A stretch of 64,000 bases of DNA from contig JAKMXF010000324.1 in NCBI GenBank assembly GCA_024704765.1, positions 62,001-126,000 of the forward strand, read 5' to 3'. The notes beneath the pieces are model-generated. The model worked only from the letters and a program-made list of their open reading frames with translations, searched no databases and had not been told where the DNA came from. Each line of letters opens with the position of its first letter. The stretch's first letter is position 1. The stretch is from Oopsacas minuta (Eukaryota > Animalia > Porifera). Shown here piece after piece: positions 913-16,097 of the stretch. The position numbers and the translations under genes are program-made.

Positions 913-1128
913 GTCGCCAAAGATGAACTTCTAAAATCAAAACTCCCAACTACAGTTCTCAGAAAAATTTGGTTTCTATCCGACATTGACAAAGATGGAA
1001 AACTCGACAGAGAAGAATTCATCCTTTGTATGCATTTAGTTAACCAGAAATTGAAAGGAAACGAACTGCCCGAGACTTTATCAGATAAGTTAGTCCCGCC
1101 TACTAAACGTGGGTACCAGCAAAATTAG
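913..1128 (+). CDS. EHD1: Last exon of an EH-domain protein (EHD1-4 type); upstream exons not located
   Basis: Acceptor ttccttcag at 912. Translation KLPTTVLRKIWFLSDIDKDGKLDREEF...LVPPTKR matches the C-terminal EH/EF-hand of EHD proteins. The 763 ORF start is intronic. Confidence 0.85.
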   Translation, partial: VAKDELLKSKLPTTVLRKIWFLSDIDKDGKLDREEFILCMHLVNQKLKGNELPETLSDKLVPPTKRGYQQN

Positions 1129-1375
1129 ATTATGGCGCTGATTTGAATTTGTATTGCGAATGTTATATATCTTGTTTACATTAATTAATTAAATGAAACA
1201 TATACTTATGGGTAACTTTATATTATTAGTAAACAACTTTTTTTGCAATTTTCAGGGCTCACCCATTAAGCTATTTCGACGATTGTTTAGCCTTGGCCGC
1301 GAGGTGATCCACGGACGACAGCAGGGGGTCCACACTGATTTATCTGTTCTTTACAAAATTAGAATTGTAGCCATA

Positions 1376-4300
1376 ATGGAATTCAAAACACCCAAAAGAA
1401 TAACAACAATTAACAACCAATCAAATACACAAACAGATGTACCTATATCTGACAACCAATCAAATTCAACTATTCTAAAGCTTAATTACACTGAACCATC
1501 ATGGACAGCTATTCCTGAAAATTCATATAAATTGACTGTAATTAAAGATGGTAAAGAAATACAAAGGTTAGCATTCCAGCTGCCTATTTGGTTGTTAGGG
1601 AAATATCAACAATGTACTTGTATGTATATTTCCCAAATATCTAGGTGTGTTTGCTTGGTTACAAACAGCGATTTAAGCTATGGATAATCAAGGAAAGACA
1701 TTCAATGTAATACAGTCAACTACCGTATATATCGATATCTTATATTGTACAAATATGGTCCCAAACCGTCAAAGTAACAAATATTCCATTGGTTATATCA
1801 AAGTAATTATCACGATCCCTCGAGCTTAGATATAACGGATTTACTAGTTGGCTGTACTACTTTTTTGCCCTGAAACCCTTCAAAGATTCCATAGCATATA
1901 TATATAAAAATAAACAACAATAAAACAAACAAATCAATCTGAAGCAGTACTACTGCTTATCGTATCAAAACAAAGACTCGTGATACTAGATATACTCGAG
2001 TTTGTTGGTGTATCAAGGAAATCGATTGGATCCAAATCAATCGACATACTGTTTAATAAATCCATTGAGCGTGTTAATTTTGGTCTCGATGGTTTCATCA
2101 GCTCGAAAAACTCATCATTACCATCTAGACATTCCTTTAGAGCTGGCAGAGGTGCAGACAGTCGTTTAAAAGTATTCTTTTCTATCTCATTTTCCCTTGG
2201 CAACACTGGGAAAATATCAAGTATACACCTGTACATTGATTCTTTTACCATTGTCAATGTTCTGCCTGTTCTTTTCACCATAGGTAAATTAGTGAATCCT
2301 TCACCTAGGGTAAAAAGCATTGTTGAAGGAGGATAGTTAATGTTTAATATCTGTAACGATCTCAAACTCGAACTATGTACATGATATGTTGTTATTAGTC
2401 TTGTCACCTTGTTTACGGTAGAAAACACATATACATACCCTGTACTTAAGCCCAGGAACAGCCACGGGTCGCAGGATTCGATCGACATTATATAATGCTT
2501 TTGTTTCTGCCTATCTCCTTGTACTTGTGATGTCAAATCGATCTCCATATTCGGTTCCATCTTGACCGTGTCCCATGTGTGTAGAATCATACCTCTTCTG
2601 TAGAAGAAATGAAGGCCATCGTTTGAGTGTGTGATCCTTAATCCCTGAATTTCTTTCATGTTTGCGTCCGTAATGAAATGCTTCATCTCCATTAAGTTGA
2701 TAGAGAATACATGTATATATCCTCTTGAAATAGAATACACCTTTCCTTTACTAAATATTATCGATTTTATTGCGTAGGAATTAGCCTCGATATGATATGT
2801 AATCGATAAATTGCCAGTTATGGTGTCCATCTCGAAAATAGTCACTCTCCCGTTTTCATCGCCCGCTAGAAGAACATCCCCGACAACTTCAATGCAAATT
2901 ACAACATTCTCCAATTCTTTAATGTGCAAAATATCAAGTGTACTTGACGAGACGACAATTATATTTTTCTCAATCGTAGTAAGAAATATGAAATTCCTAG
3001 CACACAATAGTGTAACTATGAACTGTGAAGGCAATGTGGTGGTTGTAATTCTGTCTAGCGTTAACGGATGCATTAGGTCAAGCTTTATGCCCTGTTGACC
3101 ATGAGCTATTACCAAATTCCTATCAAAATCCTGAGTGATATCTGCCAGATAAAAAACTTCAATTCTTTTGATTTCTTGCTGCGCTTGAACAATTTTTGTT
3201 AGAGGAACCTTGAGGTATTTCAAGGCCTCCTCGGCGAATGGTCTCCTCGAAGGCGATTTCTTCCAACAGCTTTCCATTAGCGCGGTCGCACTATACGCTA
3301 CCTCATTTACTTTCGGGCAATTCGGGCGAAAACCATAGCTAATCAGATCCTCGATTTTTTCCCTCTGGTATTCGAATGCTCTTAGCCCTGTGCATATTTC
3401 ATAGATCAGAAATCCGAACGAAAACATATCTGTTCTCTCCTCATACTCCATTGTGCCATCTTTTACTAGCATTTCCGGTGCTGGATATTCTCCTACATTT
3501 TGCCTCAAATATCCCACAAACATCGTCGTGGCTGCGTTTTCAAATTTTCCAAGCTTGACGTTGACCTCTGTATCATGACACAACGAACAAACTAGAACTG
3601 ATTCAGTGCGTATCCCGCGATGCATTATTTTCGATCTATGCAAGTACACTAATGCTTCACAAATTTGCGTTAAAATTCTTATTTTAAAATTATAATTAAG
3701 TTCCACTTTGCGAACAAATAATAAATTCTCCATATTCTCACTCGGACCAGATTCCAAAGCGCAGATCAAAGGTTTGGTCGAATAAGCGACAAGTTTATGT
3801 AAAAACGGAGTGTCGAATGTTCTAGATCTTTGATAGATCTCTATTTCTGCCCAAGCACTATACATTTCAATGCCAGAGTTTCGTTTACTGATTGTCCCTT
3901 CAGCGATCATTGGATATTTCTTAAAAAGCACTTCCATGTCTCTGAAAGTGCCACACTCAAATCCTAGAACGTCACAGTGCCTCTGCAAATTAAAGTTTAT
4001 GCTTTGTGTAGTATCATCTATTGAGAGATCTTCTGGGTAGAAAGCAGGCAATAGATCGGATATGTGAATCTTTTTGGAATGTTTGGGACAAGTAATGCTC
4101 ACGTCTTCTAGAATTTCTGGTAAAATCGCCTTCCAGCAGAAAGCGTGCGATGTATCGAGGTTATTCTGCACACATATTGGACAGTACACGGATATATCCG
4201 CGCCTAATATCAGCCGTGGATACCAATGCTTTATGAGTGAGTACAAATATGAATACATTAGTTTCAATACCAAGGAACCGCCATCTGTGTTAGGCACTGA

Positions 4301-7300
4301 AATCTCAATGCCATTACTGTCCAACACTTCATTTCGCTTTTTCACTATGCGTAAAATATAATTTTGCCTATTTTGGATTAAAATCCCCCATTTTGTGATT
4401 TTATAGCGCGTCAGTGCGATGTCTTCTTGGGTTGCTTCGCTCGTTAAGCATTCAAATTGTCCGACGATTGCTGGAAGGCAGTTTAAAATATGAGCTATTA
4501 ATCGAACCCAAAGGCTCCAGGGTTGATAATCGATAGCGAAAAATGAGTAATTGGAATTCGGAATATGCATGAGTTGCTCGGGAGCCAACACGCTAGGCAC
4601 AAACCAAGAATTTTGATCCAACGGCATTGCAATCGCGTTCTGTGCGAGGAAATAATATATCCCCGCTGGCGGTTGAGATTTCGAGTATCGAATCAAAAGC
4701 TCTTCAAGGCCTAATTGCGTGATAGTATAAGAGTTGAGGTATAAGGAACTATGTGTGGAGCGTCCTACCGTGTGTTCAATGAGACCCACTATCCAGTCTC
4801 GCTCTAGGAAAACAAGATCTTCACATCCATGGTTGTTTGAAGGGAAATATGATATGTAACCGGTATTTTCAAGGAATTCTATTATAGTGGATAATTCCTC
4901 TATGCCTAGCAAATCGGAGTTACCCAAAGACATTCGTATATTCTCCCAGAATTCAGATTTGCTAATTATCGGCCCGTTTTTTCCTATATTCTTTTCTCGC
5001 ATCTCCTTCACCAACTCTTGTATACCAATGAAACAGCCAGGCACTGTGTAGCTCTTCTTCACAACATGTGTATCCGAAAGTAGTTCATCTCTCAGATGGT
5101 CGGTATAGATAATTGGATTGTTTGTTGCTGGTTCCATTCTCAAAATGAAAATTTTTATTCCATCATCGAATTGAAGTTCTTCTATCAAACAAAGCACATC
5201 GACTTGAACATTTTGAGCTACGACAACTCCAATATGGATGGGAGATTTGGGATCGAAAATATTCATATATTGTACGATTTCCCGTATTATCTTCGAATCT
5301 ACATTGCCAATTTCCCAAACCAACAAATACACGCTTGGGTTTATGCCTAAGACTTCATGTACGTGTTGAAATCCGAATGTGACACCGAAATTTACGATAT
5401 TAATATTCGTCGAATCCTTGAATTGCTTTTCTAAATCTGTCTTCACAGCTTCAAATAATTCTATTTCATTGCAAGCATCCACTAAGACAATCTCTGAAAG
5501 TGAAATGGTAACTTCCGAATTGAGTCTTTGTTTGTAAAATGCCCAAATATCAGTTGCCATGGACAATGGAATGTTGATTAAAGACTCAGTCGCTTGTAAA
5601 TTCAACGCAACCTCGATTTTTCCCAAACTAGTTGGCAACCTCAATAAATACGGATTGTAGCTAAGATCCAATTTTCTAAGATATTTAATTGTCGAAACTG
5701 ATGGTGACAATTCTACTAATTGATTCCTACTCAAATTTAACTCTATAAGATAAGAGTTCTCAAGACAAGATGGAAAATGACGGAATTTGTTTCCTTGTAG
5801 ATATAAATATTTAATTTTCTTGCTCATAACCACGGCGGGTAATTCAGAAATCAAGTTATATGATAAATCGAGATGTAATAAATTCTTGAGTTGTAGGACA
5901 TCACTTGATATTAACCAAAGTCTGTTGTTAGAGACGCTCAATTTTGTTAAATTTGGTAGATCGCATATGGAATTGTCAAGGATTGTTAATCGATTGAAAT
6001 TCAAATTTATCTCCACGATTAAGTCTATATCGATTGGAAGAACTGCGAAAAAGGATTGAATTTCTGGCAAAAGACATCCGGAAAAATTCAAATTTCTTCC
6101 CTGATTGAGTAAAAAGTTCTTAGATTTGAGGAATATTTCGCAGGCCGATATGATATTTCCACTTTCAACTGCCAATAGAAAGAAAACACTCAGTTTGAAA
6201 TATTCATCGTCCAATAAAGGTTGCAAAAGTTTCATCTCACTTATGAAATTTTCATTTTTCCCGCTCGTTTTGTCTGGATTTCCTTCTAAAAATAAACTCG
6301 CTAGTTCTGTCTCACCTTCACAGATAGATTTACACAATCGAATGAATGATATACTAAAATTAGCTTCAATTGGAAGTGTTTTAAGAACATATTCGAAATT
6401 CCTTATTTTGTATTGAATGAGAATTTCCATAACTTTTATGTGTCCAGCGCGTGCAGATTCTAATAGCAAACTGTCAAGTTGAATATTTGTGAAAATCTCC
6501 ACATTCTTCTTATGACATTCCGGTAACTCAAGTAAGTTGTTAAGAAGCTCCAAACTCTAAATTCAAAAATTTTAAATCCAAATATATTTCTCTGTTGGTT
6601 TAAGAACTTACCTTTTTGAGAAGGGTAAGGTCTTGCTCTGAAACAGCTTTCCATAAATCTAATAATAAATAGAATAATATCCACAACCAAATATATTCAA
6701 ACCCTAAAATCTTCTTGACGTTTTGCATAATACCTCGTCGGAGGTCGTTCGGTATGAAACAGAGCTCATAGAAAGTTGAAACCGGTTCCAAACGATACAC
6801 AAGAATAATCAAAAATTAATAATATTGAAACACTTTTGAGATAAATGCCTGTTCAATCAGTTGGTTAAAACCTTTTCAATCATGCCACTTATCCGGTTAA
6901 CAGCTGTGATTATACAATAATGCAAACAATGAAGTTTTGTACCTGAATAGCATAGCTATTAAATATGGAATCGTGATGCCATTGAGTATTAAAATTAAGA
7001 ATACGGACTTAGAATGTAACACCGAATAACTCCCTAACTAGCAGAATCCGTGTGTTATATAATTTTACCTCTCAAAACCTTAGAAACACTGAATAAATTG
7101 GTGGAAATGACACTTTTCGGTTTACCGGCTAACCGTCTCCATCCCAATATCGATTCCTTTCAATAATAACATAATTATTTGTTTATGTAACTAACCGATA
7201 ATTACGTAAATAAGTTTGATCTCTTTGAATTCTCCTCTAATGCCTATCTCTAGGGGAGTTGCTTTATGTACGTCCTCAAGAGAAGAACAGACGCCATGCT

Positions 7301-10300
7301 GAATTAACGCAAACATTTCATCCAAGCGGCCTAGTTCTGCGGCCAAATGTAAAATCGTTCCACCATTCTCGTCTCTTAAAGGAGCAGAAAGTTCCTCTAA
7401 GGACACTTCATTTAAATTTAGCCTAAATAATTCTAGTTTTCCTTCTCGAAGCCATTTGACTAATGCCTGAACTCTCTCACCCATGCTTTACAGCTAAAAA
7501 TTACCAGAACTTGATTCAATTGCTATTTCAATGCAAAGAACCTATTTGAAATTTGATATGTTTCCTCAAATACTTGCTTTAACTGTAAGTATATCTGTAT
7601 ATGAATATTTGAATAACTACATTCCATTGTACATAATATACTTCACTTTCATCTTTTATATCCGGGTTGTTTATGTAATAGTGTTAGACATGAAAGCTCA
7701 TCTCGAAGACATTTTGAAGTATTGACAAAGAGGTGTGAGATCATGATTAATCATATGATAAACAAAGTTGACAACATTTGCATAATAATTGTCTTTAACC
7801 TCTATCATATCTTTTCAGTATAGATCTGTGCGGACGTAGCAAAACAGTGTTTGGTCGTAATGAGTGCTGTGACGTTCGTTTAGAGCATCCGTCTATATCT
7901 AGACAGCATGCTGTATTACAGTATAAACCTCATGAACAGGGTAAAGAGTTGGAGCAGGGCTTCTATTTATATGACTTAGGTAAGAATATATTGTATGTTG
8001 TTTACTTTTCAATCGAATTACATTTTTGGTAAGTGTTAAAATTGATCAGCGGTTCCCAACCTGGGGTACGGTCCCACTGGATCTATTATAGTCTATGAGA
8101 GAGGTCCACAGGATTTATAAGAAATTGTTACAAGGGGGAGTGTCCACGGGTATAAAGTTGTTGGCCAGATTAAAGGTGTAATTTAACACTATTTGATGGT
8201 TCTGTTTCAGGCCAAGTGGCCCGAATAACCGGTGGTTCTATCAAGCAAAATCTAGTGTATATTAATACATCTAATCACACACAATATTTCTATCAATATA
8301 TCACAGATATTCTGCTGGTGAATGTTCTAGTTCATTCATCATGGGTGGATAAATAAAATCAACATCAGGACTACAAATAACCTTTGAGAATTTTTCCTTG
8401 TGTTTTTCCATGTTTATTTCATTTAAGGCATTGAGAGACATGGAATGAGGTTCTTTCATTCGATTCATGAAATCAGCTAAAGAGTTCTTGTATGGAAGTG
8501 ATAAAAAACATTTCGGAAATAAGTCTACTATCGTCTTGAATTGCTTCTCATCTGCCTCTTGAAACTCGAAATTCATTAAATAATCTTGGATAATAAATAC
8601 GGTTGGAATTTGTCTCTTAAGTTGGTTCAAAAATCCTTTAATTACTTTATAGTAACTGTCAACAGCTTCTTGTTTATTTTTCCAGTAATTTCTTTGTATA
8701 ATTATAATGGTGATGAGTCAATAGGTTCTTTCTTGATTTTTGTGTTTAGATTGTCAACAAAATCTTCGATATTTTCTTCAATATCAATCCCCAGACTAAA
8801 ATATTCGTCACTTTTGTAAAGCCATTTTCGCCCTTGCACGAAAAACTTATTAATCTTGTCTTCAAAATATTGAATATCATTCCATTCGGATAATTTCTCA
8901 AAACTGAGCATACAAATCAAACCTCTTCCATATTCTCCATAAAAATTATAACCATTGTCAATATTATTTTTGAAATGAAAATTTCTTTTTTTGACCTGAA
9001 AATATGTATTCTCGTCAGTATTTGTATTTATAAACCGAGTTGTGAAATACTCTTTCATAGGGTCACTCAAAAATTGATCGTAAAAGTCCTCTAAACCGTT
9101 TTCAACGATATTTTGAAATTTGTGGATAAAAGCAACTGAGCAGTTTAAAACGACAGAGTTTCGAGGTGTTCTATTTTTGTAGTCACAATCATTGAATTTC
9201 ATATCTTGAAAAGTTGTAATTTTCGAAGGCAAAGTCAATAAGATAATATATGTCCGTTTTTTCATAAGAGTTTCGTCATTATCAATTACCCTGAATAGAC
9301 TTTTTAAACTATACACCTCGTGTCTAATATTGTCACCTATTGAACTGTCTATCGGTAGAATAAAGTTGCCAAGAATTGCGTCGCTGTTTTTCAAAGGTGC
9401 GAATCCACATATGATAATGAAAATATTTTCAGATTTTTTGCAATTTTGTGTGATTTGACGGAAATTCGTGTCAAAATCTTCGCTTGTAAAAGCCTGAGGC
9501 ATATCATGGATTTCTTCTCCAAAATATGCTCTCGTTTTTTCTCGGAAATTTTCGTAAAGGTCTTCAGGCCACGACATACAGCATAAAGGGTCTAAGTCGA
9601 ATTTCCCAAAAACGAAAGAACTCCTTGAATTCTTCAAAGCTATTCCTGCGTCTTTTTTAAATTCTACCATAGCCTCCGGTTTGCTATCAACTGGTTCATG
9701 TACTCCTCTACCCTCTGGTTCATATGGTGCGCTAGTGCTCGATTCTTGTGGCTTTTTGGCAGCAGATGGCACATATGGAACGAGAGGAGGTAGAGATAGT
9801 AATGGCGATTCAACACCCAAAATAGTCAAAATTTTCTCTCCAACTGCTCTGAAATTTGCTGGTGCGTCCAATTCGAATGAAAAACCCATGATCTTATCTG
9901 TTAAATATTTTGTATCTTTTTCACTTATTTGTGTGGTATTCATGAGTTTATTTAGAAGTTCGAAAGAAGTTTTTACATTAACTTCACATTGATTCATTAG
10001 TGTAGCGAGATAATTCTCATCTTTTTGTAAAATAATACCAACATGGAAGAGAGGGATCATTTCTTCTATTCCAATTTTTGATGCCATTATAAGAACAACT
10101 AAATAAACATACATTATTGATTATAGCAACACGATTATTATTGTCAAATACCCAGGGAAGTAGCCAGGGGGCAAGTAGACCATGGCTCAGATGTTTATCT
10201 AGGTGTTTGGTGAGGGCAGAAATCCCTGTCTAAACCCCCTGCCATGGCATTATCCCACCTCAAATTCTTCGTGACCCTTCAGACGATTCCACCCCTACTT

Positions 10301-11348
10301 ATCATTATGTACCTTCAAGCCAATTCGATATACATAGACTATTACCAATTTATTCCAGCTAGGGTTGGCTATTATTTAGTTTATGACATATTTGAAATAT
10401 AGGCCTAGTTACAAAGTGGTGTAGGATTACTTAATCTGTGTGGATTAGTTGGAGGCATTAAAGATTAGTATATTCCAAAATGGTCCATATGAACCTCCGA
10501 TATACAACAATACATCTATTGTACTCTGATATTCATATATCTCATTATAATGATGTATACAAGCGATGTCCAAAGCAGAATGTGCCTAAAACGGACAAGA
10601 AGTGTGCACAAACTGCACGCGCGAATGAGCTAACCTCACTTAGCTAAATATTTTCATTTCACTCACCTCTCATAACACTCATGCTATATAGTCAACTCCC
10701 ATTTATATCAAACACGGACATATCAAATTACCCGCTAACATTAAAGTTTTAAATTATACAAATATAATCCAAAACAGTCAAAGTAACACATTTTCCATCG
10801 CTTATACCTCAGTAATTCACGGTCCCTTAAGCTTAGATATAACTGGAGTTACTGTTTATAATATGAATTCTTTTTTCAAAGGCAGCACTCATGGATGTAA
10901 AATAAACAAAAACAGGATACCACAACGAACGTTCGTGCGTGTACGGACTGGGCATTTGATTAAATTTGGTGAAAGCACACGACTGTACATTCTTGAGTCT
11001 AATGATGGTTACCAAGCAGAAGTAGAATTGGAAGCTGATAGAGAAATTGAAGATTTTACCAAACAAAAATTAGAAAAAGAGCAGAATGAGGAATTCATTT
11101 CCTGGGGAATTGAACTTGATTCTGCAACCGGAAGTAAGTTGAGATAATTTGTAAGTAATGTTTCCATATTTGGAACTTTTAAAATATATATTTTGATAGC
11201 TAAAGAGCTAACAACAGATGGAGAAAAGGAAGAATTTTATAAGAAAGATCCTAAAAAGTATCTCAAAGATTTCTTTGAAAGAGAAGGATTAGAAATGCGA
11301 TTTGATTCTGATCAATTAGCTTGTAAGTTTGTTATTTTATTTGATTGT

Positions 11349-11383
<35 letters not shown>

Positions 11384-13136
11384 ATGAAACTTACCCACAG
11401 GTGGTAAGAACAGAATAGGTTTCACGGTTAAGCTACAACTACCTCTAGAGGATGGTAACGGTTGTCCCTTATACGCAGATGTTACCGTTGAAGGAAAGAA
11501 GAGAGATGCGATTAGAGCTTGTGCATTAGAAGCTTGTAGGTATGTATTATGGCAGTACAAAGAACTGAATAAGGGCGGGAAATTTCGAATAGCGGGCGCT
11601 TAAGAGTATCAGGTCAGCATTCAGCCATGAAGGACACAAAGTGTCGAACTTGAGACTCAAATTTGTATAGGATCAATATGTTACCGTCCTCGCCTATTAT
11701 CATGCAGGGGCTTATAGGAAATGAATAATCAGTATAATCCAAAAAGTTCTTGCCTCTTTTGGATTATACTTATCGTTCATTTCCTATAGAATGTTAGATA
11801 CTAGTGGTATATTAAGAGAGACACGGTATGTATCTTCGAGGAAAAGAAAATCAGCTGTCCGAGCTGAGAACGATTACTATTCCAGTGATGAGGATAGCTT
11901 TTTGGATCGGACCGGGGATCTGGAAAATAAAAGGGAGAAAAGACTATTGAAATCTAGGAAAACTTCTGGAGAGATTGGTGGGTGTTTATTACTAACTTAA
12001 TAATATTTTTCCCGAATTTCCTGGATTTTCAAATTTCTCATGGATTTCCAATTAAATGCAAATAATATGAATTTTTCCCCCTTGATAGCTGGCAAATATA
12101 AATTTATAATATTAATGGAGCGATCTTTGCGCTATAGGGAATATTGAAGAGATTCAAAATGAGGGAAATAAATTTGAAATTTTTCGAGGTTTATGCCTAT
12201 TTACATAAAACTTCTGTATTTATTTATTTATCATAATAAAGTCAACCAATCTATTTTGTGAGATTTTAAAATAAGTTCAAAGTGTAAATTGATTGGTTGA
12301 ATTATATTTGTGTACAGTCAAACCTGTCTAACAGCCACCTCTGTATAACGGTCACCAAAAAAACAGTCCCCTCCGATTTCCCATTATAATGACCTCTATA
12401 TAGCGGCCACTTTTGACTAGTCTCTTCAGTGGCCATTAAAGACAAGTCTGAGTGTAATTATTTTTAGAAAATTACTCTTCTTTACATACAAAATTACTTG
12501 CAATTCAATCTGAGATAAATGAGATGGAATTTCTTATACAAAACACTGAAGCTAAAAATACACAAAAAGCTAGCGAAAATCAAGATTTAGAAGAGTTTAT
12601 GAAAGAATTAAATTCTAAAAACAATACGAAATCAGTTTCAAAGTTAAAATATAAATTATCTCAATTACGAAGTGAAGAGGGTCGAATTTCAAAACTTGAA
12701 TCAATCGCTAAACCAGTGGAGATACTTGGAAAACCAATTTCTGTGATAGAACCATCCCCAAATATTGATGGATACGGTCTCAAATTACCACCTGATAATC
12801 GTAAACAAGAATATTTAAAGAAAACAACAGTTATTGTTGTTGACCCTGAAACACAAACAAGTGAAAATTCTGAAAATCAGATTATTGAAAAAAAGAAAGT
12901 GTATTCTGTCGAACTTCCTCCTCATCTCAAAGGTAAAAATCATAACATCTAACCTCAAATTTCCATGTATATAAATTACATATTTAGGTACATTTACAAC
13001 TGAAACTGACACACAACAACAACAACAACAACATAATGAAGATGTTTGGGAAGAAGCAGAGTACATAGATTGGTTACCACCCTCTAATCAATCAGGAGAT
13101 GGAACTTCGAAGCTTAATGATGAATTCGGGTATTAA
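1376..13136 (+). CDS. SLC4A1AP: Kanadaptin (FHA + dsRBD-like), 8 exons, about 555 aa
   Basis: Phase-consistent GT-AG exons 1376-1566, 7819-7979, 10882-11133, 11200-11322, 11401-11539, 11790-11977, 12468-12932, 12988-13136 (1668 nt). FHA motifs GRNECCD, HPSISRQHA, DLGSTHG. Family motifs YYSSDEDSFLDRTG and WLPPSNQSGDGTSKLNDEFGY*. Confidence 0.92.
1934..7484 (-). CDS. LRRK/Roco-like protein ANK-LRR-(degenerate Roc)-COR-(pseudo)kinase-WD40, about 1652 aa, nested in kanadaptin intron 1
   Basis: 1539-aa ORF with LRRs (LxxLxLSxNxL), COR-like region, kinase fold (APE motif, DMFSFG) and beta-propeller-like tail. Exons 7484-7196, 6658-6612 and 6556-1934 join in phase (4959 nt) and add the ankyrin ORF (GGTILHLAAELG). 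Confidence 0.85.
8301..10087 (-). CDS. DED-like + paracaspase-like + caspase-like pseudoprotease, interrupted by a 1-nt frameshift near 8716; nested in kanadaptin intron 2
   Basis: The 470-aa ORF and the 109-aa ORF lie in adjacent overlapping frames. Manual alignment to the MALT1 fold (SFVFGK, IICGFA, GNFILPIDS, YIILLTLP) and the caspase fold (GRGLICMLS, PTVFIIQDY). Likely ATG at 10087 (MASK). Confidence 0.6.
11349..11383. repeat. (GTT)n microsatellite, intronic
   Basis: Perfect GTT run in kanadaptin intron 4. Similar runs at 36002-36034 and about 42068-42084 in aGPCR introns. Confidence 0.95.
12313..12456. mobile_element. Tigger/pogo-like MITE in kanadaptin intron 6
   Basis: tacagtcaaacctgtct...agacaagtctgagtgta imperfect TIR with TA flanks. 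Confidence 0.65.
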
Positions 13137-15176: not shown

Positions 15177-16097
15177 TTATTTTCGAAGAGGCTTAAATGT
15201 ATGCGATACATATCTACGATGAGGCTTAATTGTATGCGGTACATATCTAGGTGAAATGGGACTTGAATTAGTATCCTCCGTAGTTTCGATACAGCTACTC
15301 TCAGCGTAGCTTATGGTGGAAATTGGCATTACATTCTCCGTAGTTTCGATACAGCTACTCTCAGCGTAGCTTATGGTGGAAATTGGCATTACATTCTCCG
15401 TAGTTTCGTTACAGCTACTCTCAGCGTAGCTTATGGTGGAAATTGGCATTACATTCTCCGTAGTTTCGTTACAGCTACTCTCAGCGTAGCTTATGGTGGA
15501 AATTGGCATTACATTCTCCGTAGTTTCGTTACAGCTACTCTCAGCGTAGCTTATGGTGGAAATTGGCATTACATTCTCCGTAGTTTCGTTACAGCTACTC
15601 TCAGCGTAGCTTATGGTGGAAATTGGCATTACATTCTCCGTAGTTTCGTTACAGCTACTCTCAGCGTAGCTTATGGGGAAAATTGGATAAACTCTTACAG
15701 CCTTCCGAGTTTCGATACAGTGCCTCACTAATTGTATGTGACTAACACATTTTTCAAATTCAACATAATTCGATGAATATTCTAACTCTGGTACAGGGTC
15801 TAATTTTGCTTTTTCTGCCTTCAATTTATTTATTTCTTCATCCCATACTTTCAACCCGATCTGCTTCCTATCAGCCAGCGAATTCTGTGTCATTATCTGC
15901 TCTGTGGCTTTTTTAGTATCCTCAAGCTGTCTGAGTGACTCTTTTATTTCTTTGTGTTTTTGTTCTAACTCTTTCATTTTTCTAACTTCTTCCAGTAATT
16001 CTCTTCTTTTCCTCTGCAAAATCTTGACGAAATCATTGAAACTTGTTTCTATCTCTAGTGCGAGTTCACTATACTTGTCAGTAATTTTAGTAGCCAT
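15177..16097 (-). CDS. Coiled-coil protein (TRIM/NHL-family-like N-terminus) with about 7 x 20-aa tandem repeats
   Basis: 306-aa intronless ORF. Heptad-rich first 120 aa, then repeats of ISYAESSCNETTENVMPIST. Confidence 0.65.
   Translation of the reverse strand: MATKITDKYSELALEIETSFNDFVKILQRKRRELLEEVRKMKELEQKHKEIKESLRQLEDTKKATEQIMTQNSLADRKQIGLKVWDEEINKLKAEKAKLDPVPELEYSSNYVEFEKCVSHIQLVRHCIETRKAVRVYPIFPISYAESSCNETTENVMPISTISYAESSCNETTENVMPISTISYAESSCNETTENVMPISTISYAESSCNETTENVMPISTISYAESSCNETTENVMPISTISYAESSCIETTENVMPISTISYAESSCIETTEDTNSSPISPRYVPHTIKPHRRYVSHTFKPLRK
15276..15690 (-). repeat. Coding 60-bp minisatellite, about 7 near-identical copies
   Basis: Lines 15301-15660 are six full 60-nt units differing at one site (gat/gtt), with partial units on both sides. 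Confidence 0.97.

Follow-up and report, generated by a model that had tools for sequence, protein, structure and literature searches.

A nested glass sponge gene encodes a predicted tandem caspase-fold protein lacking the His/Cys dyad

Introduction

As deposited, the genome assembly of the glass sponge Oopsacas minuta (Hexactinellida; GCA_024704765.1, PMC10280926) contains two minus-strand open reading frames (ORFs) of 470 codons (8702-10114) and 109 codons (8301-8630), lying in different frames within the part of contig JAKMXF010000324.1 analysed here (the window, 64,000 nucleotides long, to which all positions refer unless another locus is named), and these raise the question of whether they belong to one working gene and what its protein might do. 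The initial annotation of this DNA described a frameshifted gene for a cFLIP-like decoy, in which a death effector domain (DED) is followed by a MALT1-type pseudo-paracaspase and a pseudo-caspase, an architecture that it did not recognise from characterised proteins. Both reading frames and all of the motifs it quoted were found on the minus strand where it had placed them. Here we report that the gene is intact, consists of a single exon, is transcribed and sits antisense within an intron of a host gene, and that its product is predicted to carry two tandem caspase-fold domains, both without the catalytic dyad.

Results

An intact, single-exon and transcribed gene

Contigs from four public runs of one sample (X1-X4) were placed on positions 7700-11300, so that the depths given here are contig depths. 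Every contig covering the junction of the two frames in runs X1, X3 and X4, one of which (X4) is RNA, contains an additional base behind position 8714, with the depth of contigs carrying this base equal to the total depth in all three, these being all of the runs that cover the site. The frameshift noted in the initial annotation is thus an assembly error that is absent from the organism. The frame of the second ORF is open already from 8717, such that the two frames overlap, and the codon hit by the missing base is TCN, encoding serine whichever base is restored (treated as X in the analysis scripts). With the base in place the frame stays open over 595 codons, from 10087 through its stop codon, and its start agrees with the starts of the orthologues described below. 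This corrects the public annotation, which comprises the first ORF only (P0001, 461 aa, from ATG 10087 to an early end at 8702) and was cut short by the one-base error.

X4 is an RNA-type run, as evident from a 66-nt GT..AG joint (11133->11200) and from loose ends at 7980 and 10880 that read into each other's exon. No joint interrupts the X4 contigs between 7951 and 10100, where they are colinear and have a depth of 189-231, compared with 35 for a neighbouring intron contig; the gene is therefore single-exon and transcribed. The mRNA contigs contain the extra base, and so the frame is intact. An intron in place of the frameshift was considered and rejected, with no usable GT..AG found between the frames and the RNA contigs colinear across them. 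Further one-base differences between the assembly and the read contigs lie within repeats at 8195 and 10702, in some read contigs only, and the assembly may contain other small indel errors.

A family conserved among glass-sponge-type assemblies

A word-index protein search with the target matched only the target itself. An exhaustive phmmer search covering 1.84 billion representatives recovered P0002 (564 aa, E 4e-45), the fragments P0003 and P0005, and P0006, a 95-aa protein equivalent to the N-terminal domain alone; one further match, the coiled-coil/OmpA repeat protein P0004, was discarded as a false positive. A further search, with P0002 as the query, brought in P0007 (574 aa) and P0008 (573 aa). 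The family was restricted in the exhaustive search to glass-sponge-type assemblies, with no O. minuta paralogue of the double-caspase protein found at E<=0.001. The ENA assemblies concerned are ERZ25766962, ERZ25072740, ERZ25072730 and ERZ25071281.

P0002, P0007 and P0008 (564-574 aa) come from three other ENA assemblies, and are unbroken and colinear across the position of the break in the window. They are orthologues of the O. minuta protein, encoded by genes in which the antisense nesting is conserved, because the same neighbours and the same flanking FHA exons on the other strand accompany each of them. The target is 36-38% identical to these orthologues over the full-length alignment, in which 137 columns are invariant, and the ratio of nonsynonymous to synonymous substitution rates (dN/dS) among the orthologues is ~0.2-0.27, indicating at the sequence level purifying selection on the gene in at least three related assemblies.

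The family shows birth and death of copies. A second, tandem paralogue lies in the same host intron at L004:8552-10288 (+), encoding 579 aa that are 53% identical over both core domains, with a head formed by a ~125-aa coiled coil in place of the helical bundle and the double core unchanged. The fragments P0003 and P0005, from locus L005, are of this coiled-coil type; the L005 copy (L005:5001-6668), in a second contig of the ENA sample that contains L004, is broken across frames 3/2/1/3 and may be a pseudogene, may derive from another species in the sample, or may reflect assembly errors. At L006:4293-5580 (ERZ25071281) the host intron is reduced to ~900 bp, and all that is left of the gene is the ORF of the 95-aa head (P0006), which may be a relic or a head-only protein.

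Two predicted caspase-fold domains

The fold results rest on the orthologue P0002, which stood first in the eight-row family alignment given to AlphaFold2. In the resulting model, with a mean predicted local distance difference test score (pLDDT) of 62 and a predicted template modelling score (pTM) of 0.41, an N-terminal head of five helices (pLDDT 72-82) is followed by a linker whose length differs between orthologues, as evident from alignment gaps, and by two α/β domains, A and B. The first half of domain A (P0002 residues 121-250) is modelled with moderate confidence and domain B is modelled well (pLDDT 77-92). Both domains follow the order β1-α1-β2-α2-β3-hairpin-α3-β4-...-β5-α5-β6, and the segments that the initial annotation had aligned to caspase strands correspond in the model to β1, β3, β4 and the hairpin of two successive α/β domains, bearing out its register.

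In an unbiased structural search (VIA) of 48,161 PDB representative chains with domain B (P0002 residues 333-559), ranks 1-9 were all taken by members of the caspase family (Z 9.4-11.1, 173-192 aa aligned), with Dronc the best match (Z 11.1, 185 aa aligned, 4.0 Å), followed by caspase-4 (Z 10.6), the protease-like domain of cFLIP-L (3h13_A; Z 10.5, 176 aa), caspase-3, Sf-caspase-1, caspase-8, caspase-9 and CED-3 (Z 10.5-10.1), and metacaspase-4 (Z 9.4). The top matches cover ~80% of the domain. Legumain, MALT1, GPI8 and other metacaspases stand below the caspases in this list, in which the first protein from outside clan CD appears at Z 7.6. A second structural look at the top 1000 chains from Foldseek gave caspases in all 50 of the rows listed (Z 10.3-11.8). 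Domain A (P0002 residues 112-259) matched the p20 chains of caspase-1 and -2 (Z 8.6), caspase-6 (Z 7.8), a zebrafish caspase (Z 7.7) and caspase-3 (Z 7.6), with 124-130 aa aligned in the first half of the domain. Two further approaches, both too weak to be taken as other than leads, point the same way: clusters of caspase-8, -1 and -6 are the top structural rows for the ESM Atlas model of P0001 (template modelling scores of 0.31-0.36), and all ten of the best family-bearing matches to its language-model features belong to Peptidase_C14 or its clan (scores 0.85-0.87).

Several results weigh against a caspase assignment. Neither PF00656 nor any other relevant Pfam family was matched at E<=10 by the target pieces, the single domains or the orthologues, and phmmer and profile searches of the PDB (with alignments of the whole family, of domains A and B and of the N-terminal region) returned no caspase, yielding chance matches to nitric oxide synthase, an SGNH hydrolase and topoisomerase III (E 0.1-6). 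The whole-model Foldseek search was mixed and uninformative, led by two-domain Rossmann-like proteins of the LacI/KaiC type at root mean square deviations of >20 Å. Comparison of domains A and B by hhalign, as a test for internal duplication, aligned only α2-β3, at a probability of 1.8%, which is not significant and gives a duplication no support. Furthermore, the model was built from only eight sequences, the mutual arrangement of its domains is unreliable, and the second half of domain A (P0002 residues 250-334) falls below pLDDT 40. Judged by sequence statistics, likeness to caspases, paracaspases or DEDs does not rise above chance, and support is confined to the level of the predicted fold. 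At that level, the model supports two tandem caspase-fold domains after a helical module and a linker.

Replacement of the catalytic dyad

In clan CD the catalytic His follows β3 and the catalytic Cys follows β4. The His position of domain A corresponds to Phe229 (codon 9403-9401), in the motif ICGF (followed by Ser or Ala), and the Cys position to Leu286 (codon 9232-9230), in the motif LLTLPSK. The initial annotation had placed Phe and Leu at these positions of the middle domain, and the motifs around them are invariant in the four orthologues, O. minuta included. In domain B the His position falls at about Arg466 (+/- one residue; codon 8693-8691), with Tyr, Asp or Thr in the orthologues, and the Cys position at Tyr503 (codon 8582-8580), in the motif IIQDY, with Ser or Asn in the orthologues. 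No orthologue has His or Cys at either dyad position of either domain, and the only invariant His, in an EPH motif, and the invariant Cys residues are located away from these positions. On the aligned sequences, both domains lack the His/Cys dyad across the family.

The N-terminal head

Residues 1-98 of the target, folded by AlphaFold2 together with five homologues, gave five helices at pLDDT 73. The best structural match to the head reached Z 5.0, which is within the noise stated for helical models and is tied with unrelated helical bundles. Death folds account for 13 of the 50 rows listed, with 65-77 residues aligned at 3.0-4.7 Å, equally tied with unrelated bundles; they include the death domains (DDs) of IRAK2, Pelle, UNC5H2, p100 and ankyrin-G and the DEDs of PEA-15, FADD, caspase-8 and cFLIP. 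The MALT1 DD/BCL10 CARD and ASC are also listed, with the DD, DED, CARD and PYD rows tied.

No other search assigned the head to a family. Foldseek gave no match, Pfam searches with five N-terminal domains found none at E<=10 (PF01335 included), a PDB profile search gave a chance match only (E 6), an atlas shape search of the head model returned bacterial helical proteins only, and the first 100 residues of P0002, used as the query in a language-model search, returned no usable match. The RxDL motif, or charge triad, is a feature of DEDs; inspection of the last helix of the head by eye revealed no RxDL, the family consensus there being YQxxGxxILxILG. The head is at best death-fold-like in its predicted shape, and membership of the DED subfamily cannot be claimed.

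Position within a host gene and surroundings

The double-caspase gene sits antisense within one intron of an FHA (kanadaptin-like) gene, because the host exon at 7847-7980 is spliced to the exon from ~10881, which is followed by a 66-nt GT..AG intron (11134-11199). The same flanking FHA exons were found by tblastn on the opposite strand at the loci L002, L003, L004 and L006. The public model of the host gene (10863-13136, +) begins at 10863 and misses the upstream exon, and the annotation of the host gene is corrected here by the addition of this first FHA exon. The features of the locus are collected in Table 1.

Table 1. Features of the double-caspase gene and of the host exons on either side of it (positions in the window)
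Feature	Position	Strand	Basis and remarks
FHA-domain exon of host (kanadaptin-like) gene	7847..7980	+	RNA run X4, loose ends 7980/10880; spliced to exon from ~10881
Complete single-exon coding sequence	8301..10087	-	ATG 10087, stop 8303-8301; 595 codons with missing base restored
Predicted pseudo-caspase domain B	8304..8935	-	Residues ~385-595, spanning the assembly break; structural matches, alignment
One-base assembly gap	8714..8715	-	Extra A behind 8714 in 1/1 contigs each of X1, X3 and X4
Predicted pseudo-caspase domain A	8936..9628	-	Residues ~154-384; structural matches, strand order, motifs
Pro/Ser/Glu-rich linker	9629..9802	-	Residues 96-153; predicted disordered, pLDDT 28-33 in P0002 equivalent
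Predicted N-terminal helical domain	9803..10087	-	Residues 1-95; five helices in model
Next exon of host FHA gene	10881..11133	+	Joint 11133->11200 in X4; ORF; tblastn

The window and the three loci with full-length orthologues have in common the gene order C2H2 zinc-finger gene, double-caspase gene and LRR-Roc-COR-kinase gene. The last of these, a large Ank-LRR-Roc/COR-kinase (LRRK-like) gene, adjoins at 1934-7484 (-) and is the same neighbour at all of the orthologous loci; it had been flagged separately as a pseudokinase in an earlier note on this DNA. Dispersed repeats lie in or beside the host intron at 7700-7820, 8179-8241 and 10703-10851, where contig depths reach 1,000-3,000 with many loose ends and joints. 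Further along the window, an ORF of 306 aa (15177-16097, -) encodes an N-terminal coiled coil and, after it, a 20-aa repeat that is present seven times. This coiled coil and the L004 paralogue's head share 35% identity (E 4e-15), which suggests that a coiled-coil module has been shuffled between the two.

Discussion

Comparison with known systems

The sponge protein resembles cFLIP-L (CFLAR) in its general plan, in which a recruiting helical module and a linker precede a caspase-fold domain that lacks the catalytic Cys. It differs in that cFLIP-L combines a pair of DEDs with a single pseudo-caspase domain, whereas the sponge protein has one helical head of ~95 aa and two pseudo-caspase domains, replaces both dyad residues in both domains, and shows no detectable sequence similarity to cFLIP-L. 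Both of its domains match the caspases (MEROPS C14A; PF00656), such as Dronc, CED-3 and caspase-3, -6, -8 and -9, in predicted fold and in the order of the strands; in contrast to these enzymes the sponge protein lacks a PF00656 match (E<=10) and the His/Cys dyad, and carries two domains on one chain where caspases form a two-chain dimer.

Paracaspases of the MALT1 type share the clan CD fold, with MALT1 lower in the list of matches (Z 8.1 and 7.4). Its Z of 8.1 compares with 10-11.8 for the caspases and was reached only on domain B, with no MALT1 row listed for domain A, and the sponge protein lacks Ig or death domains as judged by Pfam. In separase, a very large protein, the C-terminal region consists of a pseudo-protease domain and, after it, a caspase-like domain that is active, the two being packed together. 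This arrangement is similar in that one chain bears two consecutive clan-CD-type domains, of which one is dead in separase; however, the second domain of separase is active, whilst both appear dead in the sponge protein, and no separase chain is among the matches listed.

The expectations of the initial annotation were thus borne out in part. Two caspase-like domains without catalytic His and Cys are supported by the predicted folds (Z 7.6-8.6 for domain A and 9.4-11.8 for domain B) and by the replaced dyads. The middle domain as a MALT1-type paracaspase is not, given that its listed matches are caspase p20 chains, and neither is a fusion of two clan-CD subfamilies, with no MALT1 signal for domain A and no significant hhalign alignment of domain A with domain B. 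The DED pattern that it saw in residues 1-85 is not demonstrable, with a best Z of 5.0, no Pfam match and no RxDL. Of the checks that it proposed, modelling and fold comparison of the P0002 protein returned caspase-fold matches for domain B and for the first half of domain A, whereas Pfam returned neither PF01335 nor PF00656 (E<=10); it had named an absence of both caspase-fold and death-fold matches as grounds for abandoning its reading, and caspase-fold matches were obtained, with the head alone confined to Z 5.0.

Weighing of the alternatives

We favour, with moderate confidence, an intact nested gene encoding a 595-residue dead double caspase-fold protein that acts as a non-catalytic scaffold or regulator. 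The initial proposal of a cFLIP-like decoy, in which an N-terminal DED docks on sponge DED assemblies of the FADD/caspase-8 type and the body is a pseudo-paracaspase joined to a pseudo-caspase, draws on the 13 death folds among the 50 listed neighbours of the head, with the DEDs of FADD, caspase-8, cFLIP and PEA-15 at Z 4.2-4.8, on an LKxxC-type motif conserved in the second helix of the head, and on the place of the cFLIP-L protease-like domain (Z 10.5) among the top matches of domain B. The head matches, however, are tied with unrelated helical bundles and lie below the stated noise level for helical models, with DD, CARD and DED rows tied; Foldseek, the atlas, Pfam and the PDB profile search all lack a head match, five helices are modelled with no RxDL visible in the last, domain A gives no paracaspase signal, and the L004 paralogue does without this head. 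We consider this proposal unlikely. A caspase likeness that reflects a generic three-layer α/β sandwich or a modelling artefact, in a lineage-specific family outside clan CD, is less probable again. It would fit the missing sequence-level support, the shallow alignment and moderate pLDDT, and the Rossmann-like proteins that reach Z 6.5-7.6 and head the whole-model Foldseek list; but the top nine unbiased matches and all 50 listed rows of the second look belong to the caspase family and exceed the highest-ranking unrelated fold by 2-4 Z, caspases are indicated by the language-model features and by two predictors independent of each other, and the likeness arises separately in both domains.

An active enzyme employing non-canonical residues, for example the invariant His548 of the EPH motif with Cys572 or Cys392, appears very improbable. 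One His and five Cys residues are invariant in the four orthologues, and the EPH and KVIC motifs recur in the paralogue, yet all of these residues are placed away from the ends of β3 and β4, the dyad sites of clan CD, the paralogue and P0005 have lost the Cys of ICGF, and Cys392 and Cys572 are placed within strands β1 and β6 and are probably structural. Least credible of all is a real frameshift in a pseudogene undergoing decay: whilst the assembly sequence is frameshifted and copies elsewhere have decayed (the fragmented L005 copy and the 95-aa head at L006), DNA-type and RNA-type contigs all contain the extra base, and both parts of the gene are conserved in frame with intact orthologues at a dN/dS well below 1.

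Possible function and implications

A dead double caspase-fold protein of this kind would act as a scaffold or regulator by way of protein-protein surfaces of the caspase type. Domains with the caspase fold function in pairs, joined along the edge of β6. Furthermore, cFLIP-L acts by heterodimerising with procaspase-8 (PMC7586951). Because of this dimerisation at the β6 edge and the cFLIP-L precedent, pairing in cis, or with an active caspase, can be envisaged: the two dead domains on one chain would most likely associate with one another to form an internal pseudo-dimer, or else an active sponge caspase may be the partner of one of them, on the pattern of cFLIP-L and procaspase-8. The packing between domains in the P0002 model, at its pTM of 0.41, cannot discriminate between cis and trans pairing. 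The N-terminal module may recruit or oligomerise the protein, with the coiled coil taking its place in the tandem paralogue.

A bolder proposal, which we put forward tentatively and by analogy, is that a dead caspase dimer with covalently joined halves, pairing in cis at the dimer edge, was an independent invention of the glass sponges, with exchangeable heads (either a coiled coil or a bundle resembling the death fold) that would target it to signalling complexes and so tune sponge caspases. If this were true, a cFLIP-like layer of control would have arisen separately in one of the earliest-branching animal lineages.

Pseudo-caspases are rare, with FLIP(L) described as the only human one (PMC7586951). 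In agreement with the initial annotation, which did not recognise the architecture, we found no description of a single chain that combines two dead caspase domains. Because Pfam does not recognise the family, a domain-based census of sponge cell-death genes would miss it. Should the protein prove to be a built-in pseudo-dimer, it would serve as a naturally occurring one-chain model for the interface of the caspase dimer, and would imply that the control of caspases by non-catalytic means evolved on more than one occasion in animals.

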